From IMG/VR virus record IMGVR_UViG_3300037042_002125, positions 158,079 through 222,078 of that record: DNA of 64,000 nucleotides; one strand, given 5' to 3'. The notes under the pieces are model-generated. The model was not told where the DNA came from. It made no database searches and worked only from the letters and a program-made list of their open reading frames with translations. Numbering within the stretch: the first letter of the stretch is position 1; each line of letters opens with the position of its first letter. Shown piece by piece: positions 29,026-62,756 of the stretch. Made by a program: the position numbers and the translations under genes.

Positions 29026-29027
29026 GG

Positions 29028-29570
29028 TCAGTCCTTGTTGGTGTTTGAGATAAATGAGCTACGGCTCTTTGGAGTCTCCCACCAATCGACACGAGAGCAG
29101 GTAACCCCCAAAGCCTTCATCTTTATTGAGACTAAAGTGTGCATCCACTTTGCAAAATTCTCGCTCGTTGGTACAAAGTCTACAACTAGCATACCACCAT
29201 ACAGCTCTTGCAATAAAGGGGACATTGAATCGTTTTCAACAGTCCATGCTACCTCCACTCCTTCCAGCTCTACTGGTTGTAATCTAGATGTTTCTGGGAA
29301 TAGAATTAACCTTAGTGGATCATTTCTGTCAATGACAAACTTGTGATCAATAAAAGTATTTAGCCACTTCTTAAGCCACTCCAAGTGCCTAAAATCTGTA
29401 ACCATACCTCGCACCAACGTGTCTGAGCTTAAAAAGACTTGAACTTTTGCTTCATGGCCGTGCAGATGCCTACAGGCGCATTTCAAGTCTTCTGAAAATC
29501 TACCGTCTAATTCTTGACTCCAAACTCTATGGCCATAACAGAACTCAAAAGTCTTATCAATGTTGAACAT
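29028..29570 (-). CDS. queD: 6-carboxytetrahydropterin synthase
   Basis: FCYGHR, CRHLHGH, GMVTDF, DHKF, PTSEN, WETPKS. Confidence 0.92.
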   Translation of the reverse strand: MFNIDKTFEFCYGHRVWSQELDGRFSEDLKCACRHLHGHEAKVQVFLSSDTLVRGMVTDFRHLEWLKKWLNTFIDHKFVIDRNDPLRLILFPETSRLQPVELEGVEVAWTVENDSMSPLLQELYGGMLVVDFVPTSENFAKWMHTLVSIKMKALGVTCSRVDWWETPKSRSSFISNTNKD

Positions 29571-49432: not shown

Positions 49433-49654
49433 TTACAACGTAGATGATTGTTTACCCCAGGTGATTTTGTTCCACACACGCTCATGACACCAGTAGATGA
49501 AAGGCTTAACGACAATCTCAGTGGTGCCAATAGCAAGAGAAACAATAATCTTCCCAGTTACAACGTAGGAGATGATTACGGTTGTAGCTGTCCCACACAT
49601 GCGATAGCTATACGCCTTAACCAAACTCCTAATGCCAGATTCACCGTTACGCAA
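49433..49654 (-). CDS. DUF2061-family small membrane protein (start uncertain)
   Basis: RSLVKAYSYR..T....Y..TG....AIG..E...K..IYW.HERVW. Confidence 0.8.
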   Translation of the reverse strand: MRNGESGIRSLVKAYSYRMCGTATTVIISYVVTGKIIVSLAIGTTEIVVKPFIYWCHERVWNKITWGKQSSTL

Positions 49655-50498
49655 GTCCCATGTCTTGACGAATCTTTGTAGCAGAGATTGAGTGTGTTGC
49701 GTCATCGAAAGTTTCCTGGGCAATTGTATAACCAACACCGCGTCCGTACCCAATGTGGGTGATGTTCGGCACAACTTGAATCTCGTACTGACCTTGGTAG
49801 ATAGGGTCAAGGTCACGTCGTATGAAGGCCTTAACTTTCTCAATCTCGAATGGATTGGAACCATTCCAGCCTTGGCAATCACGCACTTGGATCACAACTT
49901 GACCCGTCTTCTGGATCAGACGGTCAAACAATGCACGGTGGCCTTCGTGCCAAGGTTGCCAGCGGCCAAGCATCTGCACAGTTTCCTTCTGCCAGTTGAA
50001 GACAGGACGACGGCGGTTGTTCAGTATATGGTCGCCAATGAACTCCGCCCACTTGTCAGCGTTCTGTTCAGGGACTCGGAAGTCGTATTGCTCAGGTGGC
50101 ACAAACGCTTTGTTGGTGTCCTCATACCGGCCTTGGTCGATTGTATCAACCCAGATCGTCCAGTCGGCTTTGAAGTTGTGGCGCATTTCAGGCAGAGGGG
50201 CTACAAAGTCAGCAATAGCAAAATCACCTGCTGACTTTAGGGCAAACTCCGCCATACGCAGTGATTGACGGATGCGCCCGTCATGCGAGAAGTCCCAATC
50301 ATTGAACCGCTTGCGAATCTCGTCGGCGTTGAACCAATCAACCTTTACACAGTACGGGCCAAGCATCGAGTCAGTTGTCATCGCTCTGGACAGCGACATG
50401 TTGTTGGCAGTGCCGTTGTCCTCAATGTATTTCTTAAGTGCCATTGCAAGTGTTGTCTTGCCGGAGCCTGGAAGCCCCATTACGAGTATTTTTGTCAT
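49647..50498 (-). CDS. adenylylsulfate kinase fused to HxGH nucleotidyltransferase
   Basis: GLPGSGKT, NADEIR, DFSHDGRIRQ, DFVAP, FVPP; then GRWQPWHEGH, NPF, SISATKIR. Confidence 0.85.
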   Translation of the reverse strand: MTKILVMGLPGSGKTTLAMALKKYIEDNGTANNMSLSRAMTTDSMLGPYCVKVDWFNADEIRKRFNDWDFSHDGRIRQSLRMAEFALKSAGDFAIADFVAPLPEMRHNFKADWTIWVDTIDQGRYEDTNKAFVPPEQYDFRVPEQNADKWAEFIGDHILNNRRRPVFNWQKETVQMLGRWQPWHEGHRALFDRLIQKTGQVVIQVRDCQGWNGSNPFEIEKVKAFIRRDLDPIYQGQYEIQVVPNITHIGYGRGVGYTIAQETFDDATHSISATKIRQDMGLA

Positions 50499-50516
50499 GT
50501 TGTTACCTTGTTAGTG

Positions 50517-51014
50517 TTAGAAACCAATGTTCTGGTTAATTTTTTTAGCGAATGCCCAATCGTAATGTAGCTCATACTGTAAAGGCTTTTCACGATTTGC
50601 CAAACGCCTAGCTAATTCTTGGGCATGGTACTCTGGGAATACGTTGTCCCATTTGGAAGTTATTCGGATATCAAACTTTGACGGAGGCACAAACAATTTG
50701 TTAGTATCCTCGAACCGACCAGCTTCAATACGGTCAACCCAAATTGTGAATTGGGCATTGAACAATGCTCGCGTTTCCTCGGTAGGACACACAAAGTCGG
50801 CAATGACGTTTGCGCCCCACTTGGCTGCAATGTCACACAGGTGTCCCATGCGTCGCGCTTGCTCAACACGATCAGAAGATGAAAAACCAAGGTCCTTGTT
50901 AATGTTTTTGCGTATATCGTCGGCGTTGAAGTGTACGCACTTTAGATTTTTAGCCAAGGCCTCAGCAAGATAAGTCTTGCCGGACCCTGGTAGTCCCATA
51001 ATTAGGATCTTCAT
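50517..51014 (-). CDS. cysC: adenylylsulfate (APS) kinase
   Basis: GLPGSGKT, NADDIRK..DLGFS..DRVEQARR, DFVCP, FVPP. Confidence 0.85.
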   Translation of the reverse strand: MKILIMGLPGSGKTYLAEALAKNLKCVHFNADDIRKNINKDLGFSSSDRVEQARRMGHLCDIAAKWGANVIADFVCPTEETRALFNAQFTIWVDRIEAGRFEDTNKLFVPPSKFDIRITSKWDNVFPEYHAQELARRLANREKPLQYELHYDWAFAKKINQNIGF

Positions 51015-51033
51015 ATTGTTGAACTAGTTGGAG

Positions 51034-51345
51034 TTACTCGGCTTCGAGCATTTCCTTGACGCGGGCGCGCAACGTGTCGTCAGTCCACGTGCCGCGCACG
51101 GCCAAGTACGCATCGCCTTCCCATGCGGTCATGTTGCGAGTAGTCAGTGGTGTAGTCGGGAACGAAACGACGACCTGAACGCTGCTCAGAGGACCGCGCC
51201 CAAAGTTCTCGCGATGCGGCTGATCTGGATTGGGGTTGGGAGGCGTGTAGCCGTAGTTTTCTTGAACGTCAACGAGATCAAATTCAGTGACGACGACGGC
51301 TGCAATTGCTGCGGCCACTACATAGCTTTTCGACAAGGCTGTCAT
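51034..51345 (-). CDS. hypothetical protein
   Basis: AAGGA RBS; Pro/Tyr-rich loop and C-terminal WEGDAY..GTWTD. Confidence 0.65.
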   Translation of the reverse strand: MTALSKSYVVAAAIAAVVVTEFDLVDVQENYGYTPPNPNPDQPHRENFGRGPLSSVQVVVSFPTTPLTTRNMTAWEGDAYLAVRGTWTDDTLRARVKEMLEAE

Positions 51346-51354
51346 GGTAAGTCC

Positions 51355-52272
51355 TTAAAGTTGAATGGCCGATTTTGGCCGTTGGGGTTGCGGGATAGAT
51401 TGCGGAGATTGTTTAACAAGTTGTGATTGGGTTGTTGGCTGGACATTGGGTACCCAGTTAAGTTGTGATTTGATTTGATCGAAATTACTCCTCCAAAAAG
51501 ATGCGGATTCATATTGCTGCCAAAGGTCTCCAGGCAGAATACTAACACGTTGCTTGAATTCAACCTTCTTACGAACCGTATGGAGACCTACAATTTTTGT
51601 CTGCTGATCAAACTCATCGTAAGAATCTTCCACGCTATTTAAGTCATGGTTGAACCAAGGCTCGCCTATGAAATTATAAATAGCTTTGAGCACACTTAGG
51701 GGTTCGCATACTAACGTATCGTACTCAATGTACAGAATGTTCTTACGCTCATTGCAGAACAAAGATTGCTTTACGTTAGCCAAAGGACCCGCAACATAAC
51801 CTGGGAAGTTAGGAATCTGTCCCATAAGCATATTGCTACGCTCGTACACGGTACTTAGTTGCTGATGACCGTACAGTGGCTTGATCGTGTATGGATTTTT
51901 AGCATTTAGTTGCTCGAATGAATCGAGAATCCAAGGTATTTCTCGGACGCACACAATCATCTTGAACGTAGGGAACAGATCAGCAAGCAAGGCCGTCTCT
52001 GCGGACCACCCTCGGTTGGTATTGAAACAAACGTCAGTCTTGTTTTCCTTGTAGTAACTATCAAACAGATCACGAATCATCTGCCTGCGTTTATCAATAG
52101 ATACTACAGCCTCCATCCCTGCTGCTGTACCTGTATCCTTGATGATGCTGTTGATGTACATAGCCAGCGGATCACTGATGCCAGTGGAGAACCTTGGGTT
52201 CTGCTTCAAGATCGCGCTGAGCAACGTAGTACCCGATCGAGGCAAGCCAGAAATAAAGTGATATGTCTTCAT
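51355..52272 (-). CDS. PAPS-dependent sulfotransferase, RaxST-like
   Basis: YHFISGLPRSGTTLL..IL.QNP, NTNRGW, IVCVR..WILDSFE, YDTL, GLH.VR, FW. Confidence 0.9.
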   Translation of the reverse strand: MKTYHFISGLPRSGTTLLSAILKQNPRFSTGISDPLAMYINSIIKDTGTAAGMEAVVSIDKRRQMIRDLFDSYYKENKTDVCFNTNRGWSAETALLADLFPTFKMIVCVREIPWILDSFEQLNAKNPYTIKPLYGHQQLSTVYERSNMLMGQIPNFPGYVAGPLANVKQSLFCNERKNILYIEYDTLVCEPLSVLKAIYNFIGEPWFNHDLNSVEDSYDEFDQQTKIVGLHTVRKKVEFKQRVSILPGDLWQQYESASFWRSNFDQIKSQLNWVPNVQPTTQSQLVKQSPQSIPQPQRPKSAIQL

Positions 52273-52358
52273 TTGAAAACTCCAGTGACTACGCCGATAA
52301 TGTAGCCAAGAATGAACGCTACCATCGGGTGCTGTATGACGGCGTGAAGTTTAGCCAT
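52269..52358 (-). CDS. 29-aa membrane peptide (not in ORF track)
   Basis: MAKLHAVIQHPMVAFILGYIIGVVTGVFK; overlaps both neighbours. Confidence 0.5.
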   Translation of the reverse strand: MAKLHAVIQHPMVAFILGYIIGVVTGVFK

Positions 52359-54063
52359 TAGACTTCACCTTAGTGATAAGCTTGCCAAGGTCAGGCATGT
52401 ATAGGTACTGTATCTCGCTATTGAACAGAGTGACCAGCGCATCATACGTGCTCTCGACCAGCGGTTGGCCGGCCAGATTGAAGCTGGTGTTGAACAGCAT
52501 AGGCATTCCGGTAATTGACTCAAAAGCTTTGATGAGTTTGTAGTACACAGGGTTCTGTTTTTCAGTAACAGTCTGGATGCGGCAGGTACCGTCAACGTGT
52601 GTCACTGCGGGAATAAGATCGGCCTTGTCTTCACGCACCTTCACAGCGTACATCATGAACGGAGACTCTTCGAGGCCGGCCATTTCAAACAGTTGGTCTG
52701 CGTACTCTGCCATAACCGAGCCTGCAAAGGGGCGGAACCACTCGCGGTGCTTGACCGAGTTGATAAACTCTTTACCATTAGGCGCGCGCGGATCAAACAA
52801 GATACTGCGATTGCCCAAAGCGCGTGGACCGCCTTCTGCTTGCCCTTGGAACAAGGCGACGATCTGTTGTTTGGACAATAGGTCTGCTACATCTTCTGCA
52901 GTTGCATCTTCTACCTTGATGTTGCCGTTCTTCTCAGCCACCTGAATGGCCTCGTAGTTAGGAGGGGCGCCAAGATACACTGACGTTAGAGGGCGCACCG
53001 TCAGTTCCTTGCTGTGCTGATACCACGCGTATTGTGCCAGGCCGATCGCCGTGCCGCCGTCATGCGCCATTGGATCAACGTAGAACTCAATGTTAGGGAA
53101 CGCCTTGACGTACTTGTAGTTGGCGACGCAGTTGAGCGCGAACCCACCAGATAGTACGATGTTGGTTTCACCAGTTGTGTCAATCGCCTTCTGGATCAAC
53201 CGCATCACCATTTCTTCGGCTTCATTTTGAACCGCGTAAGCAAGGTTCTTGTCTTGCTCACGAACCAGATTGAAATCGTTGTGCCACTCACGAGGCTCAG
53301 TGTAGCGTTTCAGATATGGGAACCTGTTCTCGTCGATGTGTGCGCCCGCTGGGTACGCAGGGATCAGCAGGTTTTTGTTTCCCTTGCCGTTGACGAAGAA
53401 GGGTGGGATGCTCGTGTCTGGTTTTCCGTACGGGGACAAGCCCATTGTCTTACCAGCTTCAATGAAGCCGAATCCCAGGTACTGGGAGACAGCTTCGTAT
53501 GCCTTGGTAATGGTGACAGAGCTATCAAACTCTTGGATGCCGTTGTCGTAGTAGGTGTTGGTGCCACCGTCGGAGTAGCGTTTGTAGACTGCATTGAACT
53601 CATGTGGGTAACTGCATTGGTAAATTGTCTCGGTCTCGTATCCGGCAACCTCTGGGCCGTTCTCGCTAACACGTTCACGGTGGACCGAACCAGAACCGTC
53701 AACGATGATTGCGGCGGCGGTCTCAAAGCCTGAACCGTAAAAGGCAGCCGCAGCGTGGCCAAGATGGTGTAAGTTCCCCATCACAGATACCTTGATATTC
53801 GGGTTAAATTTACGGGCCAATGCAGAGTACGCATTTTCCCCTGTCCACGGTAAAACAGCTAATTCCGGTGAGGTACCGCCTATAATTAGCTCGTCTACGG
53901 GGTGATTTATGAGGACCTGTAGCATAGCACGAAACGGGTTTCCGTCGTATTTCATGCGACTGACTCGTTCTTCTTCACCATAGAAGGCAAGAACACCGTC
54001 TACGACGAGGGCGGCGCTGCCGTTGTGGCCTGGATTGATTGCCAAAATTGAATACATGGTCAT
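52351..54063 (-). CDS. O-carbamoyltransferase (NodU/CmcH/TobZ family)
   Basis: GHNGSAA, EEERVSRMKYD, HHLGHA, VDGSG, GKTMGL, GGFALNC, DGGTAIG, GPRALGNRS, REWFRPFA, NTSFN. Confidence 0.95.
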   Translation of the reverse strand: MTMYSILAINPGHNGSAALVVDGVLAFYGEEERVSRMKYDGNPFRAMLQVLINHPVDELIIGGTSPELAVLPWTGENAYSALARKFNPNIKVSVMGNLHHLGHAAAAFYGSGFETAAAIIVDGSGSVHRERVSENGPEVAGYETETIYQCSYPHEFNAVYKRYSDGGTNTYYDNGIQEFDSSVTITKAYEAVSQYLGFGFIEAGKTMGLSPYGKPDTSIPPFFVNGKGNKNLLIPAYPAGAHIDENRFPYLKRYTEPREWHNDFNLVREQDKNLAYAVQNEAEEMVMRLIQKAIDTTGETNIVLSGGFALNCVANYKYVKAFPNIEFYVDPMAHDGGTAIGLAQYAWYQHSKELTVRPLTSVYLGAPPNYEAIQVAEKNGNIKVEDATAEDVADLLSKQQIVALFQGQAEGGPRALGNRSILFDPRAPNGKEFINSVKHREWFRPFAGSVMAEYADQLFEMAGLEESPFMMYAVKVREDKADLIPAVTHVDGTCRIQTVTEKQNPVYYKLIKAFESITGMPMLFNTSFNLAGQPLVESTYDALVTLFNSEIQYLYMPDLGKLITKVKSNG

Positions 54064-54989
54064 TTCACTTTCTTGTCGACGTCAGCACAGATGGATACGA
54101 AGATTTCGTTGAGGTCCTTCTCGGAGAACCGCATGGTTGACTCATTGAGCCTGTTGGACAACGCTACGTCAAGACCGGCCAGACGGATAGGGCTGTACTT
54201 CTTGACGGTCAGACGATCAATGATATTGAAGTAGTCCGGGTACGACGTATTGATCGGGAACGTAGAGCCAAAGATCACAGAGCCGGGTGTACCGACCGCA
54301 CGAGCAATGTGCTGGCCTACGCTGTCGCAACCAACGAAGTAGTCGGCTTCGGCAATCAACGCACCCCACTGGCGCAGATCGCAAGTGTACTTGGCGGCAA
54401 AGTTGTCGTCCTTGAGTTGGAAGTCAGGCTCGCCGAAGAACACCATGTTGTATCTTTGGGCTAATTTCTTCACCAGCGACAGGTAATCCTTTTGGCTCAA
54501 GCTGCGGGATTCTTCATCGATGATCGCAGTCTTGTCAATCTTGGCGCCTCGACCAAACGGTTGGAAGATCACGGTCCGTTGCTTCTTCTGGATGCCCTTG
54601 AGGTCGTTGAGTGTGCTGGTAGCCACAGCGCGTTCGGTGATGTTGAACACCATCTGCGGTACGCCCAGATCGCTGTGATCCTTGGTCAGATTGATTTCCC
54701 GGTCAAAGCCTTCGACCAGCGAAATCTCCTGACGGAAATATGCGGGGTTGCGATACGGCTCAGGTGTGATGATACGATCCGCGTTCTTCACCACGTTGTC
54801 AAACACGCCCTTGGTGTCCAGGTTATACGCACGATCCTGTAGCTCAGGAATGCCCCAGAACAGAAAGTCCCATGCACCAATGAGCACAGCCCAATCATCA
54901 TTAGGGTTGAGCCGTCCGTACTTGATGAGTGCGGGGATGGCCGCGATCACTCGGCCTGCGCCGCCGTCGATGAAAAATATAGTCTTCAC
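54060..54989 (-). CDS. GT-B glycosyltransferase, GT9 (heptosyltransferase)-like
   Basis: GGAGRVIAAIPAL, FQPFG, ADYFVGCDSVGQHIARAVGTP..IFGST. Confidence 0.75.
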   Translation of the reverse strand: MKTIFFIDGGAGRVIAAIPALIKYGRLNPNDDWAVLIGAWDFLFWGIPELQDRAYNLDTKGVFDNVVKNADRIITPEPYRNPAYFRQEISLVEGFDREINLTKDHSDLGVPQMVFNITERAVATSTLNDLKGIQKKQRTVIFQPFGRGAKIDKTAIIDEESRSLSQKDYLSLVKKLAQRYNMVFFGEPDFQLKDDNFAAKYTCDLRQWGALIAEADYFVGCDSVGQHIARAVGTPGSVIFGSTFPINTSYPDYFNIIDRLTVKKYSPIRLAGLDVALSNRLNESTMRFSEKDLNEIFVSICADVDKKVK

Positions 54990-55705
54990 AGTAGGAGTCT
55001 TTCTTCAGTGGTTGTTGCTATTTCGGAAGTAGTAGGCGCTAAGCCTGTTAGCGAAATGTTCAAGTGTCGCTCGAACAGGATGTCAGTCTGGAGCAACGTG
55101 CCTCGCTCATCGTACGAGGTGCCAAAGATGTCGATTGCTACGTATCCGATTGCCGCCATGTACGCGATGACTTCGGCAAACAGAGGTGCGTCCTTGTTGT
55201 ATTCTGCGATTGAGCACTCCAATAAAATGTACAGAGGCAGCTTATCAAGAATGAATCCGGATGCGCCCTTGAGTATCAGTAGCTCTGCGCCCTGTGCATC
55301 GATTTTGATTAGTCCGTTCGTTGACCACGAGCCGAAGAAGTTGTGCTTGCGGTGCAGGGCGTCCACCGTTGTCATGTGCTTCTTCAGGACTAGCGTAGAC
55401 ATCGGGTTGTAGTGGAACGTCTGCTCAAGGAAGATTGAGCTGCCCGTAGTGTTCTTGTCTTCGCCGAGCGTGTAGAAATTCACGTTGTCTTGCTCACGAT
55501 CACCAAGCAAGGCGATGATCGCTCGGTCAGATAACCACGGCGCCTGGCGTTCGTCAGCTTCGATCTGCCACACTATAGCAGTAGGCCACACGGCTCTGAC
55601 CGTTTCAGTGAACTCACCACGGTAGGCGCCAATGTCAAGCACGTAGTTGATGTGTCTTCCGTGGTTCTTCAACACCGAGAACCTCTGTCTGAATTGTTCA
55701 ATCAT
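54986..55705 (-). CDS. FkbM-family methyltransferase
   Basis: LDIGAYRG, IEA, TGSS, IKIDAQGAELLILKG, Q.DILF. Confidence 0.9.
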   Translation of the reverse strand: MIEQFRQRFSVLKNHGRHINYVLDIGAYRGEFTETVRAVWPTAIVWQIEADERQAPWLSDRAIIALLGDREQDNVNFYTLGEDKNTTGSSIFLEQTFHYNPMSTLVLKKHMTTVDALHRKHNFFGSWSTNGLIKIDAQGAELLILKGASGFILDKLPLYILLECSIAEYNKDAPLFAEVIAYMAAIGYVAIDIFGTSYDERGTLLQTDILFERHLNISLTGLAPTTSEIATTTEERLLL

Positions 55706-56502
55706 TTTCTGTTCCAAAAGTCGAGCTGCATATCAGTGTAGAGATTGGTCAGTTCGTGTCCGATCACTTTCTCGGGCTCAGGACTTGTCTGAGCCATCGT
55801 CGGGCGCACGTCATGCAGACCTTCGAGACCGCCGTGGTATGAGTCGTTCTCAGGCATTGGCTGTAGCGAATCCAGACGGACTCCGCAGGACTCAATGCCG
55901 ACGAACTGACAGACCTGGTCCATTGTTCCCTGACTGTTATTTACAATGTCCAAATAGCGTAGCACCAGCAGGTCAGCAGCACCTGATTGAAATCCATGAC
56001 GCAGCGCCATGTAGGGCACGTTGATGTAACGCTCCCACAAAATCTTGCATCTGTTCTTGTCGTTGATCGGCAGCCCCTTGTCGATCAGGTCTTGATCCAC
56101 GAACGTAGTCTTGTGAGAGTTCTTGCGTATCAGCAGAATGTAGGACGCCAGCACACTGGGTATGGATCGCACTGTGCAGATGATCTTGGGACGCTCGTGC
56201 AGAACGTCCTTCATCATGTGAGCCTGACGCGGCCAGATGCGGTTCTTGTCAACGATGATAGGCTTGGATACGTGCTCGTAAGCGCCGAACACCAAGCCTC
56301 GCATCATGTTGCTGTACTGGTTTGGGTCTGGATTGACTAACGCTGCCGAGATTTGGGGCCAGTTGTTGTTGAAGATCGTAATCATGTCCACCACTGGTGA
56401 CGTAGTGGAGGCATGAATCATCGGATGTTGATTCAGCAAGGACGCAAGTACCTGTGAGCCAGAGCGTGGAATGCCCGAGAGCATGATAAAAGACTTGTCC
56501 AT
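55702..56502 (-). CDS. second PAPS-dependent sulfotransferase, RaxST-like
   Basis: SGIPRSGSQVL..LLNQHP, DKNRIW, ICTVR..LAS, GLHDVR, DFW. Confidence 0.88.
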   Translation of the reverse strand: MDKSFIMLSGIPRSGSQVLASLLNQHPMIHASTTSPVVDMITIFNNNWPQISAALVNPDPNQYSNMMRGLVFGAYEHVSKPIIVDKNRIWPRQAHMMKDVLHERPKIICTVRSIPSVLASYILLIRKNSHKTTFVDQDLIDKGLPINDKNRCKILWERYINVPYMALRHGFQSGAADLLVLRYLDIVNNSQGTMDQVCQFVGIESCGVRLDSLQPMPENDSYHGGLEGLHDVRPTMAQTSPEPEKVIGHELTNLYTDMQLDFWNRK

Positions 56503-56987
56503 TACAGTTGTTTCCCGTTCGTTGGGGCCGCAGTTGCTGTAGTACCGCGCATAATCTCAAGGAACTCCTTTGTGCCTAGGAAGTTCCAGCCACCATCAAT
56601 CTCGTACCGCACATTGGCCAAGGCATTTCGTTGGATAGCTTGCACGGCCCAATTCAGTACACGAGCGTCAAGCCGTTGCCCCATTTCCTTTATGGTGACG
56701 AACGATACTCCAGTTCGGGTTGTTTCCAACACTAGCAACGCGTTGACCAGATTAGGCTTCATCCATGCAGGGATAGCGAGCGACCTCAACCATAGACAGC
56801 GGAACGTTTTGCACGGTTGCTCAGGTCGATCTTCATAGATGGTGCAGCCAGTTTCACACACGAAATGGCACTTCGTACCTGGATAGAACTGGTGTCCGTG
56901 CGCTTCGCCGGTCGCCCAACCATCGCAGCAGGCCGTACAGCCACCACAGTTCCTTTCAGCCATTATGTGAATTGTGGCACCTCTCAT
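56502..56987 (-). CDS. Cys-cluster protein (YkgJ/CxxCxxCC-like, Zn or Fe-S binding)
   Basis: CGGCTACC...CHFVC..GCTIYEDRP..CKTFRCLW. Confidence 0.75.
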   Translation of the reverse strand: MRGATIHIMAERNCGGCTACCDGWATGEAHGHQFYPGTKCHFVCETGCTIYEDRPEQPCKTFRCLWLRSLAIPAWMKPNLVNALLVLETTRTGVSFVTIKEMGQRLDARVLNWAVQAIQRNALANVRYEIDGGWNFLGTKEFLEIMRGTTATAAPTNGKQL

Positions 56988-57682
56988 AGCTGCCTCTTCG
57001 TAGTCGGTATGGTAAAGTCAGGACCCTTGAACCATCTGGTAAACTGATGACTAGTTCCTTTAAACTTGTAGGGTCCGATATGGTTGCACACGATGTCAGG
57101 ATCGAGATATATCTGGAAGCCGCCCGTACGTAGCTTGTTGAACGCGTGAATGTCCTCGCTTATGAGGCTACTGTCTTCGATCACAACGTCAAAGATCATG
57201 CGACGCTCTTTGTTGTCCTTGGGATCGATGTAGGGCACACTTGCGTCCCACAAATACTGCATGGCCTTGCGACTCATCTTGACGAAGCCTGTTCCTAGCC
57301 CATCAACTTCGATCAGACCAGTGACGGGGTCCTTGGGACGTCGCTGTACACTGCGAACAACGTACTCCTCAATGTCGCCCTTCTTGCGATACGTGCCACC
57401 AACCACGTCAGCCTCGTGGTCTAGCAGTCGGAAGAACCACTCAGGTTCCCACTCAATGTCGCTGTCAATCCAGATCAGATCGTCAACGCCCGACTCAAGA
57501 GCAACGTGGATTGTGTCGTTACGGGCACGTTGCAGCAGAGCGTCGAAGCTGATCCACATTGGCGTAATATCGACGTCACGTTCCATGCCCATCTTGATCG
57601 TATTGCACAGACTGTTCGTGTACCACACGTCGAGGCGGCCGTCGTAGCACGGCGTTCCTATCATCACTTTTCGTGCGCTCAT
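56984..57682 (-). CDS. GT-A fold glycosyltransferase
   Basis: IGTPCYDG, RARN, WIDSD, GGTY, GTGF, SED, H.G; ATGA-coupled start at 57682. Confidence 0.8.
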   Translation of the reverse strand: MSARKVMIGTPCYDGRLDVWYTNSLCNTIKMGMERDVDITPMWISFDALLQRARNDTIHVALESGVDDLIWIDSDIEWEPEWFFRLLDHEADVVGGTYRKKGDIEEYVVRSVQRRPKDPVTGLIEVDGLGTGFVKMSRKAMQYLWDASVPYIDPKDNKERRMIFDVVIEDSSLISEDIHAFNKLRTGGFQIYLDPDIVCNHIGPYKFKGTSHQFTRWFKGPDFTIPTTKRQL

Positions 57683-58323
57683 TGCAGTGCCTTTATCAAG
57701 TCTCGAAATTCTAGGAGGACAGTCTGTGCATCGGGCCCGAGATAGTTGTTCATGAACGAACGATATGGTACGGTGTCCGTCCACTCGTACACAATCTCCT
57801 CGTACTCGCGGTCGTGAAAAATGCTGTTGCCAACCAGGTGTTCTAGCATACTCAGTTTAGGCACCACAAGCATATTGCCGTCACGCTCAGTGAATATCCA
57901 GCGATGGTGAATGAAACCCAACCACTTGGCGCTCTCGATCCGCGTAAGTTCTGTGCGGATGCTGGGCGTGGTAATGACGCCGGCCTTGGCAATACGCGGC
58001 AGTAGCTCCAACGTAGTGAACGGGTTGTAGAGGTCTTCGAGAGTGTGAGTGCAGATCGCGTAGTCGAAGCGTCCGTGACGTTCCACATACTCAAGCATGG
58101 TGTTCCACGCCTCACGGTCGCAGACATCAATTCTCACGCCACTAGGTGACGTCACTGCATTGATGTCAATCACGAGGTCAGTGATAGACGCAGACCAGCC
58201 TCCGCCATGAGTACCGCCGACGTCAATGACAGAGTATCCCGGCGTCTGTTGTTTGGTGTTCCCTACGTCGTGTAGGATACGCGCACGGGTATGCAGCGTC
58301 CTACCGTATTTGATTGTGAGCAT
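57679..58323 (-). CDS. SAM-methyltransferase-like protein
   Basis: VIDVGG, FDYAICTHTLEDL.NP, HHRW. Confidence 0.7.
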   Translation of the reverse strand: MLTIKYGRTLHTRARILHDVGNTKQQTPGYSVIDVGGTHGGGWSASITDLVIDINAVTSPSGVRIDVCDREAWNTMLEYVERHGRFDYAICTHTLEDLYNPFTTLELLPRIAKAGVITTPSIRTELTRIESAKWLGFIHHRWIFTERDGNMLVVPKLSMLEHLVGNSIFHDREYEEIVYEWTDTVPYRSFMNNYLGPDAQTVLLEFRDLIKALQ

Positions 58324-58325
58324 AT

Positions 58326-59270
58326 TCAAGCCTGCAGTAGTGAGTTGAAGAACTGACGCCACTCGCCAATGCGATGTTCCCAACTGTAGCGACTGTTGAA
58401 CCAGGCCGACTGTGCACGCCATTGTGAGTCGGGTAGCCACGTGTACTCGTCGATAGCGTCTGCAAGCACCTTGGCGTACCGCTCGACTAGTCCGCTGCGC
58501 TCACTATTGACATACGTGGCGTGAGGTCCGCACGTCTCAGGCAACGCACCAAGACCTGTAGTGACTATGTGGCAACCAGCAGCGCCAGCCTCAATCGCGG
58601 ACAAGCAGCTAGTCTCCTCGAACGTACTTGGGTACGCCAGAATGTGAGCCCGTTGCACCGCTACGCGAACGGCTTTGTTGGTGACGTATCCTCTGTAATT
58701 TACACCTGGAGCAGTCCGACATTTGGCAAGGACGTCCTTGTTTTTCTGACCTTCGCCACTAGCGTAACCCGCACCATAGATGATGTTGGATGAGTACACG
58801 TCAAGAACCACATTGCGGCCAGGCTTCACAATCTCGTATGCGTCAAGCAGAATGTCAAGACCCCGATCTGGCATGGAGGTATAGATGAGCCGAATCTGAC
58901 CGTCCGGCTTTGGCACGAACGGTATTGGGTCAATTGCGTTTCTGATTACGGTGTTTTGAACGTGCTCGATGTTGTACAGTTCACGGAATTGGGCAAGCTG
59001 CCATTCACTGACGTAAACAAAGGACGATACTTGGCTGACGAACTCAGCGTCGCGCATTCCATAGGTTGCGGGCTGGTCAGTCATCAAGTGCTGCCACACT
59101 ACGTTGAGCCTTTGGGACTCAAGTAGCTGTGGAGCGCAGATGCTAAGGATCAAGTTGACCCGGCTTAGAATAGCGGGCCAATTTGGTCCTAGGTACCGCA
59201 AGAGGGAGGTGTACAGAAGTTCTGATCCGCCTTTTGGCGTTATTGATATTGGTGTCATGGTCTGTACCAT
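58326..59270 (-). CDS. GT4-family glycosyltransferase (start uncertain: 59270 or 59258)
   Basis: GGSE, VSEWQ, IRNAI, YTSMPDRGL, YPSTFEETSCLSAIEA.AAG, GALPE. Confidence 0.9.
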   Translation of the reverse strand: MVQTMTPISITPKGGSELLYTSLLRYLGPNWPAILSRVNLILSICAPQLLESQRLNVVWQHLMTDQPATYGMRDAEFVSQVSSFVYVSEWQLAQFRELYNIEHVQNTVIRNAIDPIPFVPKPDGQIRLIYTSMPDRGLDILLDAYEIVKPGRNVVLDVYSSNIIYGAGYASGEGQKNKDVLAKCRTAPGVNYRGYVTNKAVRVAVQRAHILAYPSTFEETSCLSAIEAGAAGCHIVTTGLGALPETCGPHATYVNSERSGLVERYAKVLADAIDEYTWLPDSQWRAQSAWFNSRYSWEHRIGEWRQFFNSLLQA

Positions 59271-59282
59271 TGGTGGAGAACG

Positions 59283-59307
59283 AAAAAGGAGTGTACGCAC
59301 ACTCCTT
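59283..59307 (-). terminator. intrinsic terminator after the fibre gene
   Basis: AAGGAGTGT/ACACTCCTT stem plus T tract on the - strand. Confidence 0.7.
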
Positions 59308-59314
59308 ATTTACA
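59307..59314 (-). promoter_or_regulatory. TGTAAATA motif heading the modification island
   Basis: Abuts the terminator stem. Confidence 0.55.
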
Positions 59315-59333
59315 GTGCTTGATCTGCGGACGG

Positions 59334-62300
59334 TCACGCTCCTTCTAGCACACGCACGCGTTCTGTGAGCGCCTCTACGCTGGTAGTCAAAGCGTCATTC
59401 TTTTCTGCCAGTTCCTGAATGGCTTTCACCATCACTGGCAAGAGCTTACCAGGTGCTGCTTCGTATCTTGATTCGTCCTCGTTGGAGATCACAAGTTCAA
59501 GCCAGTCACGGACCTGATGGTAATCCATCGCTTGCTTGAGTTCCTGGGCAATAAATCCAGCGTACCCCTGACCAACTTTTGATCCGTCACGCATATTCCA
59601 TGTGAATTTCACTGGACGGATTTGCCGAATGAAATCAAGACCTAGTGGAATGTCCTGAATGTCTTTCTTGTCACGGGCATCAGATAGTGCAGTGATACTG
59701 GTTACCTGAGCACGGATGGTTGCTATGCTTGCGTTACCAAGAGTAATAGTATTAGAGCAAGCCGCTGCTAATGCCTGTGAGTTAAATCCTATTAGGATAT
59801 TATTTGATCCCCCGTTAACGGTGTATCCGGAACAGCAACCAATAGCTATGTTATTGCTGCCGGTGGTGTTGCCGTAGAGCGCCAAGTACCCTTGGGCGGT
59901 GTTATTACTGCCGGTGGTGTTGGAGTAGAGCGCCTGTTGTCCCTGGGCGAAGTTATTACTGCCGGTGGTATTGTAGAAGAGCGCCTGTTGTCCCTGGGCG
60001 AAGTTATTATTGCCAGTAGTGTTGAATATGAGCGCCAAGTACCCCGAGGCGATGTTATTACTGCCGGTGTTGGAGTAGAGCGCCTGTTGTCCCTGGGCGA
60101 AGTTATTATTGCCGGTGGTGTTGGAGGTGAGCGCCAAGTACCCTTGGGCGAAGTTATTACAACCGGTGGTATTGGAGCTGAGCGCCAAGTACCCTTGGGC
60201 GAAGTTATTGTTGCCGGTGGTGTTGAAGTAGAGCGCCTGGTATCCTATTGCGGTGTTATTACTGCCGGTGGTGTTGCCGTAGAGCGCATGGTTTCCTTGG
60301 GCGAAGTTATTACTGCCGTAGGTGTTGCTGTAAAGTGCAGCTTGTCCCTGGGCGGTGTTATTACTGCCGGTGGTGTTGGAGGTGAGCGCCTGGTATCCTA
60401 TTGCGGTGTTATTACTGCCGGTGGTGTTGGAGTAGAGCGCCTGTTGTCCCTGGGCGAAGTTATTATTGCCGGTGGTGTTGTTGCTATAGAGTGCCTTGTA
60501 TCCCTGGGCGAAGTTATTACAACCGGTGGTGTTACCGTAGAGCGCCCAGTACCCTTGGGCGAAGTTATTACGGCCGGTGGTGTTGGAGGTGAGCGCCAAG
60601 TACCCTTGGGCGAAGTTATTACCGCCGGTGGTGTTGCAGTAGAGCGCCTGTTGTCCCTGGGCGAAGTTATTATTGCCGGTGGTGTTGCTGCTATAGAGTG
60701 CCTTGTATCCCTGGGCGAAGTTATTACTGCCGGTGGTGTTGCCGTAGAGCGCCAAGTATCCTATGGCGGTGTTATTATTACCGTAGGTATTTGAGTAGAG
60801 CGCCGAGTATCCTATGGCGGTGTTATTACGGCCGGTGGTGTTGCAGTAGAGCGCCCTGCATCCTTGGGCGGTGTTATCATTACCAGTAGTATTGCCGTAG
60901 AGCGCCCTGTATCCTATGGCGGTGTTATTACAACCGGTGGTATTGGAGCGGAGCGCCTGTGGTCCCTGGGCGAAGTTATTACTGCCGGTGGTGTTGCTGT
61001 AAAGTGCCCCGCATCCTTGGGCGGTGTTATGGCTGCCGGTGGTGTTACCGTAGAGTGCCTTGTATCCTTGGGCGAAGTTATTACTGCCGGTGGTGTTCTT
61101 GCGGAGCGCCAGTGGTCCTATGGCGGTGTTATTATTACCGGTGGTGTTGCATTGGAGCGCCTTGCATCCTTGGGCGGTGTTACTACAACCGGTGGTATTG
61201 TAGAAGAGCGCCTGGTATCCTTGGGCGAAGTTATTACAACCGGTGGTGTTACCGTAGAGCGCCTGATATCCTTGGGCGAAGTTATTGTTGCCGTAGGTGT
61301 TGAAGTAGAGCGCCTTACTTCCCTGGGCGGTGTTATTACAACCGGTGGTATTGGAGCGGAGCGCCGAGTATCCTTGGGCGAAGTTAGTACTGCCGGTGGT
61401 GTTGGAGCGGAGCGCCGAGTATCCTTGGGCGAAGTTATTACAGCCAGAGGTGTTGCCGTAGAGCGCCCTGCATCCTATGGCGGTGTTATGGTTGCCGGTG
61501 GTGCTGTAAAGTGCCCCGTATCCTTGGGCGAAGTTACCACAGCCGGTGGTGTTCTTACATAGAGCACCGATACCAACTGCAAAGTTATTAGCGCCCGTAG
61601 TATTACTAGCCAATGCGCCAGTCCCGATACCAAGGTTGTTGTAAGTCGGGGTTAGTGAGGCGCCGCCTACCGAAGCGCCATTGACTGTTAATGCTCCGGC
61701 ACCAGTTACCTGTAGGCAGTTAGTACCTGCTTTAAGGTAGATAGTGTTAACCAGACCGGCAGTCCCTACATAAGAGCCTATGATAGTGTTGTCAACACCT
61801 GTGGTTATGCTCTTACCAGCATCAGCACCAATAGCGATGTTGTTACCTGCATTGTTCGATGCGTATAGGGCACAGCAACCGATACCAATGTTGTTGGAAC
61901 CAGTAGTATTGCTGTATAGTGCCTTGTATCCTTGGGCGGTGTTATTATTACCGGTGGTGTTGCATTGGAGCGCCTTGCATCCTTGGGCGGTGTTATTACT
62001 GCCGGTGGTGTTGGAGAGGAGCGCCAAGTATCCTATTGCGGTGTTATTACAACCGGTGGTGTTACCGTAGAGCGCCCTGTATCCTTGGGCGAAGTTATTA
62101 CAGCCAGTAGTGTTGAATAAGAGCGCCTTGCATCCTATGGCGGTGTTATTACTGCCGGTGGTGTTACCGTAGAGCGCCTTGCATCCTTGGGCGGTGTTAT
62201 TATTGCCGGTGGTGTTCTTGTAGAGCGCCTTACTTCCCTGGGCGGTGTTATTATTGCCGGTGGTGTTGCCGTAGAGCGCCTTGCATCCTTGGGCGGTGTT

Positions 62301-62720
62301 ATTATTGCCGGTGGTGTTGCCGTAGAGCGCCTGTTGTCCTATGGCGGTGTTATTACAACCGGTGGTGTTGGAGTAGAGCACCAAGTCTCCTATGGCGGTG
62401 TTATTACTGCCGTAGGTGTTCTTGTAGAGCGCCCAGTAGCCTTGGGCGAAGTTATTACAGCCAGAGGTGTTGCCGTAGAGCGCCGAGTGTCCTTGGGCGA
62501 AGTTACCACAGCCGGTGGTGTTCTTACATAGAGCACCGATACCAACTGCAAAGTTATTCGTGCCAGTAGTGTTACTAGCCAGTGAACCAGTGCCAATTGC
62601 CATGTTGTTGGTTCCGGTGCTAGTTGTCAAGCCAGCACCTACACCAAGGGCCAATTCACCACGTGCGTTCGCATTTGTATCAGGGATGATTGTACATCCA
62701 TTTATCTTGATAGCCATCAT
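59334..62720 (-). CDS. long repeat-rich tail fibre with S74-type chaperone
   Basis: About 60 14-aa repeats (NTTG.NN.A.G..AL), SDARDK, GFIAQE, coiled-coil end; AAGGA RBS. Confidence 0.88.
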   Translation of the reverse strand: MMAIKINGCTIIPDTNANARGELALGVGAGLTTSTGTNNMAIGTGSLASNTTGTNNFAVGIGALCKNTTGCGNFAQGHSALYGNTSGCNNFAQGYWALYKNTYGSNNTAIGDLVLYSNTTGCNNTAIGQQALYGNTTGNNNTAQGCKALYGNTTGNNNTAQGSKALYKNTTGNNNTAQGCKALYGNTTGSNNTAIGCKALLFNTTGCNNFAQGYRALYGNTTGCNNTAIGYLALLSNTTGSNNTAQGCKALQCNTTGNNNTAQGYKALYSNTTGSNNIGIGCCALYASNNAGNNIAIGADAGKSITTGVDNTIIGSYVGTAGLVNTIYLKAGTNCLQVTGAGALTVNGASVGGASLTPTYNNLGIGTGALASNTTGANNFAVGIGALCKNTTGCGNFAQGYGALYSTTGNHNTAIGCRALYGNTSGCNNFAQGYSALRSNTTGSTNFAQGYSALRSNTTGCNNTAQGSKALYFNTYGNNNFAQGYQALYGNTTGCNNFAQGYQALFYNTTGCSNTAQGCKALQCNTTGNNNTAIGPLALRKNTTGSNNFAQGYKALYGNTTGSHNTAQGCGALYSNTTGSNNFAQGPQALRSNTTGCNNTAIGYRALYGNTTGNDNTAQGCRALYCNTTGRNNTAIGYSALYSNTYGNNNTAIGYLALYGNTTGSNNFAQGYKALYSSNTTGNNNFAQGQQALYCNTTGGNNFAQGYLALTSNTTGRNNFAQGYWALYGNTTGCNNFAQGYKALYSNNTTGNNNFAQGQQALYSNTTGSNNTAIGYQALTSNTTGSNNTAQGQAALYSNTYGSNNFAQGNHALYGNTTGSNNTAIGYQALYFNTTGNNNFAQGYLALSSNTTGCNNFAQGYLALTSNTTGNNNFAQGQQALYSNTGSNNIASGYLALIFNTTGNNNFAQGQQALFYNTTGSNNFAQGQQALYSNTTGSNNTAQGYLALYGNTTGSNNIAIGCCSGYTVNGGSNNILIGFNSQALAAACSNTITLGNASIATIRAQVTSITALSDARDKKDIQDIPLGLDFIRQIRPVKFTWNMRDGSKVGQGYAGFIAQELKQAMDYHQVRDWLELVISNEDESRYEAAPGKLLPVMVKAIQELAEKNDALTTSVEALTERVRVLEGA
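59840..62600 (-). repeat. two arrays of ~42-bp coding tandem repeats
   Basis: Arrays at about 59840-61620 and 61860-62600; identical 69-bp segments at 61521-61589 and 62490-62558. Confidence 0.9.
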
Positions 62721-62756
62721 CGTTCCTTTCAAGAACTCGGTTATTTAGATTGTCGA

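Follow-up and report, generated by a model that had tools for sequence, protein, structure and literature searches.

A predicted sulfation and glycosylation cassette linked to the tail-fibre gene of a large freshwater phage

This study was concerned with why a large freshwater phage would carry two RaxST-like sulfotransferases, and with which molecule they would sulfate. The window analysed is a 64,000-nucleotide stretch of DNA, positions 158,079 to 222,078 of IMG/VR record IMGVR_UViG_3300037042_002125. A sequence-only reading of the window had claimed that one ORF (ST1) matches RaxST along its length, that a second ORF (ST2) is a diverged paralogue and that the neighbouring fibre has Tyr at its variable repeat positions, and from this it had proposed phage-encoded protein tyrosine sulfation. 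Each of these observations held in our analysis. The proposed interpretation was only partly supported, because family membership, donor supply and the fibre as the likely target were supported while nothing shows that tyrosine is the acceptor. No published description of such a system was found.

The features of the region are summarized in Table 1. The sulfotransferase genes lie in a tight, one-strand cassette that starts just after a repeat-fibre gene and runs GT4, methyltransferases, ST2, GT9-like, NodU-like carbamoyltransferase, ST1 and then two APS-kinase homologues. The genes are packed with overlaps of 1-16 nt or short gaps.

Table 1. Features of the 49.4-62.7 kb region, in window coordinates, with the evidence for each assignment.
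Coordinates	Strand	Feature	Evidence
59334..62732	-	Repeat fibre of 1132 aa, the proposed substrate; about 47-55 copies of a 17-residue repeat, NTTGxNN[F/T]A[Q/I]GxxALxx, and a C-terminal Peptidase_S74 intramolecular chaperone domain; repeat region rich in N, T, G and A and nearly free of D/E	PHROG virion structural / tail spike / tail fibre families, E 4e-220; Peptidase_S74, E 1e-11; repeat analysis
58326..59300	-	GT4-type glycosyltransferase (GT-B fold, Glycos_transf_1)	Pfam Glyco_trans_1_4, 5e-10; phrog_2170 glycosyltransferase, 1.5e-29; homologues in 45 of 81 viral loci
57679..58440	-	Putative class I methyltransferase; listed ORF overlaps the GT4 gene and homologues are 210-219 aa, so the true start probably lies further in	Weak Pfam Methyltransf_23 match, E 0.0036, below cutoff; conserved in the closest cassettes
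56984..57784	-	Conserved cassette protein, possibly a GT-A-like glycosyltransferase (weak assignment)	phrog_1574, 1.2e-20; phrog_34859 glycosyltransferase, 3.8e-5; NCBIfam PgaC/IcaA, E 0.0011; found in 31 of 81 viral loci
56502..56987	-	Cys-rich 161-aa protein of unknown function	phrog_9155, 5.6e-35; no Pfam hit
55702..56502	-	ST2 (266 aa), RaxST-family PAPS-dependent sulfotransferase, diverged paralogue of ST1	Pfam Sulfotransfer_3, 1.1e-11; TPST1 the best PDB sequence hit, 4e-4; 34-35% identical to the annotated sulfotransferases of cyanophages S-SKS1 and S-SRM01; 30.7% identical to the Ralstonia homologue
54986..55717	-	FkbM-family O-methyltransferase	Pfam Methyltransf_21, 1.1e-10; TIGR01444, 1.7e-7
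54060..54989	-	GT9-like glycosyltransferase (heptosyltransferase family)	Pfam Glyco_transf_9, 2.3e-6; phrog_8954, 1.8e-78; in a profile search against the PDB all the sugar-transferase matches are GT9 enzymes (heptosyltransferase II best, E 0.0024; WaaC and TibC, E 1.5-2.5, not significant); homologues in T4-like cyanophages lie next to ADP-heptose genes
52351..54063	-	NodU/NolO-type O-carbamoyltransferase	Pfam Carbam_trans_C, 4.6e-61, and Carbam_trans_N, 3.6e-22; NodU, 7e-41; phrog_1601, 4.8e-157
51355..52272	-	ST1 (305 aa), RaxST-family PAPS-dependent sulfotransferase; core residues 1-265, then a disordered Q/P-rich tail	Pfam Sulfotransfer_3, 6e-14; family profile against the PDB gives TPST1, 7e-14; AF2 model, pLDDT 93; Foldseek tops TPST2 and TPST1
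51034..51345	-	Small conserved 103-aa protein of unknown function; many homologues share an E-N-Y-G motif	Recurs beside ST1 and the kinase in 16 of 81 viral loci; alignment
50517..51014	-	Stand-alone APS kinase homologue (CysC-like), taken as the PAPS supply	Pfam APS_kinase, 3.3e-15; carries the DLGFS..DR motif
49647..50498	-	Fusion protein of 283 aa: APS-kinase-like N-domain joined to an HxGH / ISATKIR nucleotidyltransferase C-domain	In a profile search against the PDB the top 19 hits are all APS kinases (2.9e-12 and weaker) and NMNAT matches the C-domain, 2.5e-5; fold search puts APS kinases on top; C-domain is CTP_transf_like; this fusion is typical of viruses; next to ST1 homologues in 39 of 81 viral loci
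49433..49650	-	Small DUF2061 predicted membrane protein; listed ORF runs to 49882, but the domain and the homologues indicate a gene of about 70 aa	Pfam DUF2061, 5.2e-16; recurs next to the kinase fusion

The first step was to establish what the two enzymes are. ST1 and ST2 are PAPS-type sulfotransferases, and both also match Pfam Sulfotransfer_1. BLASTP between them gives 22% identity at E 4e-14, both fall in phrog_27463, and ST2 lies on a long separate branch. The RaxST sequence of Xanthomonas oryzae pv. oryzae PXO99A (Fig. S6 of PMC6637879), read by eye, holds every motif that the sequence-only reading had listed: HFISGLPR.G..LL...L.QNP, F.TNR.W, CVR...WI.DSFE.L, YDTL, FD.....GLH.VR and LP..L......FW. 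ST1 is colinear with RaxST at about 33% identity, although this is an estimate from a hand alignment to a printed text that is missing one residue. The core lengths are similar (267 aa for RaxST and about 265 aa for ST1), the 5'-PSB and 3'-PB motifs are shared, and R12 and S118 of ST1 correspond to the catalytic Arg-11 and Ser-118 of RaxST. Both are soluble cytoplasmic enzymes that depend on PAPS made by separate genes. However, no raxX-like precursor and no RaxA/RaxB secretion genes lie next to the phage genes.

The solved structures nearest to the phage enzymes, by sequence profile and by fold, are the animal tyrosylprotein sulfotransferases TPST1 and TPST2 (profile E 7e-14 and 5e-11; Foldseek E about 2e-9, TM 0.5-0.68), not NodH or Stf0. 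Clustering with carbohydrate sulfotransferases, which had been named beforehand as the result that would count against tyrosine sulfation, was not observed by sequence, although the genomic context points to glycans. Identity to the TPSTs is only 17-20%, the TPSTs are Golgi type II membrane proteins whereas ST1 and ST2 have no membrane anchor, and, by eye, the stretch aligned to the TPST catalytic-base region is not conserved in the profile alignment. The first non-TPST fold match is NoeE (E 1e-7), and the next-best solved relatives are the sulfotransferase domains of the CurM and olefin-synthase polyketide systems. As the phage also supplies APS kinase, which would turn host APS into the donor PAPS, a working sulfation pathway is credible.

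The second step was to ask whether the fibre is the target. The same fibre-to-GT/ST module recurs widely, with ST1 homologues on more than 535 IMG/VR contigs, and fibre-ST synteny holds across many phage lineages. A large N/T/G/S-rich, acid-poor ORF lies upstream on the same strand in 32 of 49 loci with enough flank, and in five loci ST1 is the first gene after it, starting 48-69 nt downstream. The module travels with a fibre gene to different genomic positions in different phages, next to the DNA polymerase here and next to gp13/gp15 and sheath genes elsewhere. In addition, cellular homologues often sit next to autotransporter genes. For these reasons the fibre is considered the probable target of sulfation, whether directly or through its glycans.

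The neighbouring genes favor glycans as the acceptor. First, among 78 distinct viral loci, 67 carry a glycosyltransferase homologue, 60 carry a GT9-family gene (including TPR-GT9 fusions), in 47 that gene lies within two genes of ST1, and APS kinase is present in 37. About 11 of the 78 show no recognisable glycosyltransferase, though most of these are short fragments. Secondly, the STs are translationally coupled to glycosyltransferases, a sugar-type carbamoyltransferase and O-methyltransferases, and in relatives the GT9, carbamoyltransferase and ST1 genes overlap by one base. Characterised NodU/CmcH-family carbamoyltransferases act on sugar or small-molecule hydroxyls, not on proteins. Third, in more distant phage lineages the partners change but remain sugar enzymes, namely a GT4-MT-GT2 fusion and TylF-like sugar O-methyltransferase/GT2 fusions. 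However, the GT9 assignment is weak at the level of Pfam and the PDB, and co-occurrence of ST and GT genes would also arise if both modified the fibre independently.

The identities of the two sulfotransferases, the two APS-kinase homologues, the GT4 and GT9-like glycosyltransferases, the carbamoyltransferase and the FkbM-type and other methyltransferases, together with their packing behind the fibre gene, are shown by sequence, whereas the chemistry that follows is inferred from homology and synteny alone. In this view, the region is one co-directional module that decorates the phage's own fibre. The glycosyltransferases would attach sugars (possibly heptose) to the invariant Thr/Asn of the NTTG repeats in the infected cytoplasm, parallel to the way heptosyltransferases modify autotransporter repeats, and the carbamoyltransferase, methyltransferases, ST1 and ST2 would then tailor those sugars. 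The result would be an acid-poor protein fibre coated with anionic, sulfated, mucin-like glycans, which would affect adsorption, host range or virion stability in freshwater. Sulfate on fibre-borne glycans is the best single reading of the evidence, but it is held only tentatively, at somewhat less than even likelihood.

This combination of activities is also that of the Nod-factor tailoring enzymes of rhizobia (NodH/NoeE sulfotransferases, NodU/NolO carbamoyltransferases, the NoeI FkbM-type methyltransferase and NodPQ PAPS synthesis), in which a sugar is sulfated, O-carbamoylated and O-methylated with a dedicated PAPS supply. However, no NodA/B/C genes are present, NodH was not detected by sequence, the phage sulfotransferases belong to the RaxST branch rather than the NodH or NoeE families, and the proposed acceptor is a glycan on a virion protein and not a lipochitooligosaccharide. 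Virion glycosylation has a precedent in mycobacteriophages (Freeman et al. 2023), where phage-encoded glycosyltransferases modify virion proteins, although those glycans sit on the capsid and tail tube and no sulfate is reported for them. The GT9-like/carbamoyltransferase pair has 35-37% identical homologues in the T4-like cyanophages S-CAM1, S-SSM7, P-SSM2 and others, sited among fibre genes; in S-CAM1 the pair lies between tail-fibre genes, beside ADP-heptose genes. Most of these cyanophage clusters lack the sulfotransferase and APS kinase. In S-SRM01 the sulfotransferase follows the long-tail-fibre gene together with a TPR protein, a glycosyltransferase and an epimerase.

The main rival is that ST1 and ST2 sulfate the fibre polypeptide directly, on Tyr at repeat positions 12 and 16 or on Ser/Thr, with the glycosyltransferases modifying the same fibre independently. 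The only characterised member of this sulfotransferase family, RaxST, sulfates a peptide tyrosine, and the nearest solved folds are also protein-tyrosine enzymes. In at least 18 of 80 cellular loci the homologue sits immediately upstream of a large autotransporter gene with no glycosyltransferase nearby, and one of these loci also has an APS kinase, which argues that family members can act on protein directly. By eye, RaxST is closer to that cellular clade than to ST1. The gene logic is that of the autotransporter heptosyltransferases AAH and TibC with their substrates AIDA-I and TibA, in which a cytoplasmic enzyme encoded beside a large repetitive beta-helical surface protein modifies the passenger protein and a GT9-like fold family is involved. 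Here the substrate would be a phage fibre and sulfation is added, and the phage GT9-like protein matches LPS heptosyltransferase II only weakly and TibC not significantly (E 2.5). No description of a sulfated autotransporter was found in our searches.

In about 47 clean repeats of the window's fibre, Tyr occurs only at the variable positions 12 (22 of 47) and 16 (31 of 47). The window's fibre has 67 Tyr at two repeat positions flanked by invariant residues, and the cassette has two STs. However, only 3 of the 67 Tyr have a D/E within 5 residues and the single DY lies in the C-terminal chaperone domain, whereas RaxX (GGDY) and TPST substrates have acidic neighbours. Across related fibres N1, T2, T3, G4 and N7 of the repeat are invariant, while Tyr is confined to variable positions and ranges from 9-55% at position 12 and 0-61% at position 16 among fibres whose phages keep the same highly conserved STs, and overall Tyr drops to 1.8-2.1% in some whose phages keep both enzymes. 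The autotransporter passengers next to cellular homologues have only 1.5-2.5% Tyr. Lastly, Liu et al., who surveyed raxST homologues, state that these presumably act on other substrates. Direct sulfation of the fibre protein remains plausible but less likely than sulfation of the fibre glycans, and tyrosine as the acceptor is less likely still.

A further possibility is that the cassette remodels the host cell envelope, adding sulfated, carbamoylated or methylated sugars to the LPS core or an exopolysaccharide, for instance to block superinfection or prevent progeny re-adsorption. GT9 is the LPS heptosyltransferase family, homologous gene sets in cyanophages are traditionally called LPS genes although their function is unknown, and there are phage glycosyltransferases that change the host serotype. 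However, no flippase, polymerase, ligase or lipid-carrier transferase was recognised, and none of the enzymes has a transmembrane segment. The TPR-GT9 fusions suggest protein substrates, the module moves with a fibre gene as noted above, and the phage looks like a virulent jumbo myovirus-type phage. This explanation is considered improbable.

The least likely explanation is that the sulfotransferases act on a small molecule or another macromolecule, such as a secondary metabolite, a small peptide like the adjacent 103-aa protein, or glycosylated phage DNA. The Ralstonia homologue (42% identical) lies with cysC in front of a giant NRPS gene, the CurM and olefin-synthase domains are relatives, and phages can glycosylate their DNA. 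However, there are no NRPS or PKS genes in the window. The E-N-Y-G motif of the 103-aa protein is conserved in 10 of 14 homologues, but the protein is absent from most ST1 loci and its resemblance to RaxX is not conserved. The window also has a separate 7-deazaguanine pathway for DNA modification, and in relatives the cassette is linked to tail genes, not replication genes.

ST1 and ST2 are both members of the PAPS-dependent sulfotransferase superfamily, and the observation made in the sequence-only reading, that two RaxST-like open reading frames are present, is upheld. ST1 scored 53.3 bits (E 6e-14) and ST2 45.9 bits (E 1.1e-11) against the Pfam Sulfotransfer_3 model, where the cutoff is 27. 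The 5'-PSB loop was found as GLPRSGTT at residues 9-16 of ST1 and as GIPRSGSQ in ST2, and the 3'-PB motif (R-x7-S) is represented by R110 and S118 in ST1 and by VRSIPSVLAS in ST2. These residues are invariant or nearly so across the family. The AF2 model of ST1 (pLDDT 93.4) has a predicted sulfotransferase fold, since 48 of the 49 Foldseek matches in the PDB at E <= 0.001 are sulfotransferases or the related retinol dehydratase, and the last is an adenylate kinase. The two proteins are distant paralogues (22% identity at E 4e-14) that fall in the same PHROG family but in separate clades in a tree.

The sequence-only reading had likened the RaxST motifs to those of ST1, and this comparison was accurate. 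Every motif listed in it is present in the RaxST sequence of Xoo PXO99A printed in Fig. S6 of Liu et al. 2019. A hand alignment with this printed sequence gives about 33% identity for ST1, colinear over the full length, which is an estimate by eye rather than a computed value, and R12 and S118 of ST1 fall on the catalytic Arg-11 and Ser-118 of RaxST. ST2 shares the same motifs at lower identity. RaxST itself was not recovered by searching. A degenerate DNA pattern for the RaxX peptide DYPPPGANPKH found nothing in the genome contig collection, a second scan run with a family alignment returned 80 other genomes and no Xanthomonas (its pattern ended in GST, which excludes the GSS of RaxST), and none of 289 proteins examined contained RaxST-specific motifs. 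The surroundings also do not resemble the raxX-raxSTAB system. Between 49 and 63 kb the neighbours are glycosyltransferases, a carbamoyltransferase, methyltransferases and kinases, with no RaxA/RaxB secretion genes, and the only small neighbour, a 103-aa protein, resembles RaxX only superficially.

Among solved structures, a profile of 61 family members identified TPST1 (7e-14) and TPST2 (5e-11) as the best matches, followed by the sulfotransferase domains of CurM and olefin synthase. The model of ST1 gave the same order by fold. However, the type II membrane anchor of the eukaryotic TPSTs is absent, as the PAPS loop starts at residue 9 and there is no hydrophobic N-terminal segment. Clustering with carbohydrate sulfotransferases had been named in advance as the result that would count against tyrosine sulfation, and it was not observed by sequence or by fold. 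A tblastn search of plasmids with ST1 at E <= 1 gave no rhizobial hit, and in the profile search of the PDB at E <= 10 carbohydrate sulfotransferases appeared only at E > 1, with heparan-sulfate 3-OST at E 1.2 and Stf0 not listed. NoeE was the first non-TPST match in Swiss-Prot, but only as a fold match (E 1e-7, TM 0.53) and as a sequence match confined to the PAPS-binding loop. The tree that was built did not include RaxST, NodH, NoeE or Stf0.

The window is part of an uncultivated viral genome of 222,078 bp (IMGVR_UViG_3300037042_002125), and reads and contigs holding this region come from freshwater lake water and sediment metagenomes. It encodes a portal, a terminase, a DnaB-like helicase, a Pol III alpha-type polymerase, an NAD-dependent ligase, a UvsX-like recombinase and fibre proteins. 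The portal is 35-40% identical to those of phiRSL1, Motura and PaBG-type jumbo phages. All genes between 43 and 64 kb lie on the minus strand. From the fibre gene onwards the genes follow with overlaps of 1-16 nt or short gaps, although two larger apparent overlaps are probably artefacts of the ORF starts. The order is the fibre, a GT4 glycosyltransferase, a weakly matching methyltransferase, a conserved protein that is possibly GT-A-like, a Cys-rich protein, ST2, an FkbM methyltransferase, a GT9-like glycosyltransferase, a NodU-type carbamoyltransferase, ST1, the 103-aa protein, an APS kinase homologue, a 283-aa fusion protein and a small DUF2061 protein.

Features discussed in the text, with their coordinates
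Feature	Sequence	Coordinates	Strand
Two adjacent 356-aa ORFs	window	2430-3500 and 3552-4622	+
Terminase large subunit ORF (1238 aa)	window	9831-13547	+
Second fibre protein (650 aa)	window	19333-21285	+
Putative 7-deazaguanine genes	window	26586-29570	-
Fibre and cassette	window	49433-62732	-
APS-kinase-like/nucleotidyltransferase fusion (283 aa)	window	49647-50498	-
APS kinase homologue	window	50517-51014	-
103-aa protein	window	51034-51345	-
ST1	window	51355-52272	-
GT9-like glycosyltransferase	window	54060-54989	-
ST2	window	55702-56502	-
Repeat fibre	window	59334-62732	-
Sulfotransferase beside cysC and NRPS gene	Ralstonia solanacearum megaplasmid CP023017.1 (locus L005)	148615-149535 and downstream	
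GT9-like/carbamoyltransferase pair and heptose genes	Synechococcus phage S-CAM1, NC_020837.1 (locus L167)	176-190 kb	
Sulfotransferase beside autotransporter gene	bacterial loci L006-L011, L013, L020, L025, L026, L028, L039, L041, L045, L048, L050, L070, L075	sulfotransferase near 7001-7770 in loci with a full 7-kb upstream flank; autotransporter mostly starting near 7850-8100	

The assignment of the APS kinase homologue and of the N-domain of the fusion is solid, based on the P-loop and APS-kinase signature, a Pfam APS_kinase match at 3.3e-15, a profile search of the PDB in which the 19 best hits are all APS kinases, and a fold search that also places APS kinases on top. Their enzyme activity is inferred from these matches. 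The C-domain of the fusion is a small HxGH/ISATKIR nucleotidyltransferase of cytidylyltransferase-like type, and this fusion architecture is typical of viruses, with homologues in 39 of 81 viral loci that nearly always lie near a sulfotransferase. This domain could be a minimal sulfate adenylyltransferase, which would make the protein a compact PAPS synthase, or it could be a sugar-phosphate nucleotidyltransferase or act on something else. It shows no BLASTP similarity to the heptose-1-phosphate adenylyltransferase fragment of S-CAM1. None of the enzymes in the cassette has a membrane segment, and no flippase, polymerase or lipid-carrier transferase was recognised. Whatever is built is therefore built on a cytoplasmic acceptor, and remodelling of the host envelope is regarded as an improbable role for the cassette. 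The fibre and cassette have 51-52% G+C, in contrast to 44.5% for the rest of the window (1-49400), which suggests a module acquired from elsewhere. In relatives the same module sits at other genomic positions, next to gp13/gp15/sheath genes, and together these observations suggest a mobile module of fibre and modification genes.

ST1 has more than 2480 relatives (protein clusters) at E <= 0.001 in the protein database, of which the 120 best are 62-74% identical, and every context that was looked up was a large phage contig with the same cassette. In IMG/VR, more than 535 contigs encode a relative. A census of 81 of these loci was carried out by ORF calling and phmmer searches with the proteins of the window. 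Among the 78 distinct loci, 67 have a glycosyltransferase homologue, 60 have a GT9-family gene, which lies within two genes of ST1 in 47, 37 have an APS kinase and 32 have the carbamoyltransferase. In the nearer lineages the order GT9-carbamoyltransferase-ST1 is fixed and the genes overlap by one base. In more distant lineages the partners differ but are still sugar enzymes, namely TPR-GT9 fusions of about 450 aa, a 938-aa GT4-methyltransferase-GT2 fusion and TylF-like sugar O-methyltransferase/GT2 fusions, and a stand-alone APS kinase is also found. A large N/T/G/S-rich, acid-poor protein is encoded upstream on the same strand in 32 of 49 loci with at least 6 kb of upstream flank. In five loci ST1 starts 48-69 nt after that protein.

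Homologues are also carried by the cultured phages S-SRM01, S-SKS1 and S-SCSM1, and isolated phages show the same pattern. In S-SRM01, the annotated sulfotransferase (34% identical to ST2) follows the long-tail-fibre gene, together with a TPR protein, a glycosyltransferase and an epimerase. In S-CAM1, homologues of the GT9-like protein and the carbamoyltransferase lie between tail-fibre genes, next to a phosphoheptose isomerase, a heptose-1-phosphate adenylyltransferase fragment and an epimerase, which suggests carbamoylated heptose on cyanophage fibres. The cyanophage literature calls such genes "LPS genes" of unknown function. For the GT9-like protein of the window itself, the Pfam match (2.3e-6) covers only 45 residues, the profile search of the PDB gave heptosyltransferase II at E 0.0024 and TibC at E 2.5, and the link to ADP-heptose genes is seen only in the cyanophage homologues.

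The fibre has about 47 clean 17-residue repeats. Across nine related fibres, positions N1, T2, T3, G4, N7, A9, G11 and L15 are invariant or nearly so, whereas Tyr occurs only at the variable positions 12 (9-55%) and 16 (0-61%). The earlier remark that Tyr occupies variable positions of the repeats is thus correct. However, the tyrosines are not in the acidic context seen in RaxX and TPST substrates. In the fibre of the window only 3 of 67 Tyr have a D/E within five residues, and the repeat region has 4 Asp and no Glu in 960 residues. Tyr content of the fibres also does not track the presence of ST1 or ST2, as high Tyr goes with the sub-lineage that also has the extra methyltransferases. Fibres of phages that keep both enzymes can have as little as 1.8-2.1% Tyr, while N stays at 15-17% and T at about 10%, with 34-128 N-x-S/T sequons. 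The feature conserved alongside the enzymes is therefore the Thr/Asn-rich repeat, not tyrosine. In addition, the repeat region of the fibre holds 32 Cys, all at the variable positions 5, 12, 13, 16 and 17, and related fibres have 3.5-5.5% Cys, which is unusual for a phage fibre and for which we have no explanation. The 103-aa protein just after ST1 was considered as a RaxX-like substrate, but its proline-rich resemblance to RaxX is not conserved. Its homologues do share an E-N-Y-G motif (10 of 14) and a C-terminal VWEGD.Y.AVRG.WTD block, so it is kept only as a weak candidate for a tyrosine acceptor.

Other evidence keeps direct sulfation of protein plausible. The family is common in cellular genomes, with more than 569 hits in the genome contigs searched. 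In at least 18 of the 80 loci retrieved, the sulfotransferase gene lies immediately next to, mostly upstream of, a large autotransporter gene carrying an ESPR signal and an autotransporter beta-domain. The organisms are Dyella, Frateuria, Rhodanobacter, Oleiagrimonas, Pseudomonas sp. MPB23, Azoarcus, Burkholderia multivorans and Acidithiobacillus. No glycosyltransferase was found beside these genes, and the Pseudomonas locus also has an APS kinase. This is the gene logic of AAH-AIDA-I and TibC-TibA, and it suggests that these enzymes modify the passenger protein itself and that autotransporter passengers are sulfated. The passengers are G/S/T/N-rich and acid-poor, with only 1.5-2.5% Tyr. By eye, RaxST is closer to this cellular group than to ST1, and in the tree the phage ST1 clades are separate from the sampled cellular clade. 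In Ralstonia solanacearum, a sulfotransferase 42% identical to ST1 lies with cysC directly in front of an NRPS gene more than 15 kb long, which suggests a sulfated non-ribosomal peptide. The sulfotransferase itself matches on 133 Ralstonia megaplasmids, although the neighbouring genes were read in this one record only. Acceptors in this family are clearly diverse, as Liu et al. also concluded, but acceptors other than the fibre or the host envelope are considered a remote possibility for the phage enzymes.

The interpretation that the phage carries out protein tyrosine sulfation is only partly supported. Homology and the autotransporter pairs favour a protein acceptor. The phage-specific context favours a glycan acceptor on the fibre for several reasons. 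First, there is translational coupling to a GT9-like gene and to a sugar-type carbamoyltransferase. Secondly, sugar O-methyltransferases are constantly in company with the sulfotransferases. Third, the Tyr sites are variable and non-acidic, and ST1 is highly conserved against hypervariable Tyr positions. It is probable that the fibre is the target of sulfation at all. That the sulfate sits on fibre glycans is the preferred but tentative reading, direct sulfation of the protein is less likely, and sulfation of tyrosine in particular is unlikely. The sulfotransferase and APS-kinase assignments, the gene order and the repeat composition rest on sequence and predicted structure, while sulfate transfer to tyrosine or to any other acceptor, and every other step of the chemistry, is inferred from homology and synteny.

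Searches of the literature on phage sulfotransferases, fibre heptosylation and autotransporter sulfation found no paper describing a phage sulfation pathway, a fibre-linked ST/GT/APS-kinase module or sulfotransferase-autotransporter pairs. Sulfotransferase genes are annotated in a few cyanophage genomes, virion glycosylation is known in mycobacteriophages, and the decoration of virion and surface proteins by enzymes encoded next to the substrate gene is also known. What appears to be new here is a complete, conserved and very common phage module, from freshwater and marine samples, that joins a putative PAPS supply, two RaxST-like sulfotransferases and sugar-building and sugar-tailoring enzymes to a repeat fibre gene, and there is a realistic chance that something more novel is hidden in it. 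Sulfate esters are not a known component of phage virions, and bacterial protein sulfation is known essentially from one system, RaxST-RaxX. If the fibre is indeed sulfated, on sugars or on side chains, this would add a new chemistry to phage-host recognition, would give a function to the long-unexplained "LPS genes" of large cyanophages and, together with the sulfotransferase-autotransporter pairs in bacteria, would make the scope of prokaryotic protein sulfation directly testable. An unlikely but not excluded possibility is that RaxST-like enzymes are a general class of sulfotransferases for large repetitive surface proteins, sulfating autotransporter passengers in Proteobacteria and tail fibres in freshwater and marine phages directly on Tyr or Ser/Thr. 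Protein O-sulfation would then be a widespread bacterial and viral modification rather than a Xanthomonas curiosity, and the phages would also bring a minimal PAPS synthase in the virus-typical fusion, with its small HxGH domain acting as the sulfate adenylyltransferase.

Hypermodification of DNA was also considered as a role for the cassette and was judged unlikely, because of the linkage to fibre and tail genes and because the window has a separate set of genes, a GTP cyclohydrolase I, a radical-SAM protein, a dUTPase_2-type protein and a PTPS/QueD homologue in a row, that looks like a 7-deazaguanine (preQ0-type) pathway as used by phages that modify their DNA. The second fibre protein in the window has the same C-terminal Peptidase_S74 chaperone domain, but it has only a short, degenerate repeat region, normal acidic content and no adjacent modifying genes. 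In the terminase large subunit ORF, the terminase match is strongest in residues 800-1177 and a short "recombinase" match falls at residues 765-801; the long N-terminal part may include an insertion, possibly an intein. Lastly, the first of the two adjacent 356-aa ORFs matches a phage RNA polymerase sigma factor family (3.2e-43), while the second has no PHROG match.
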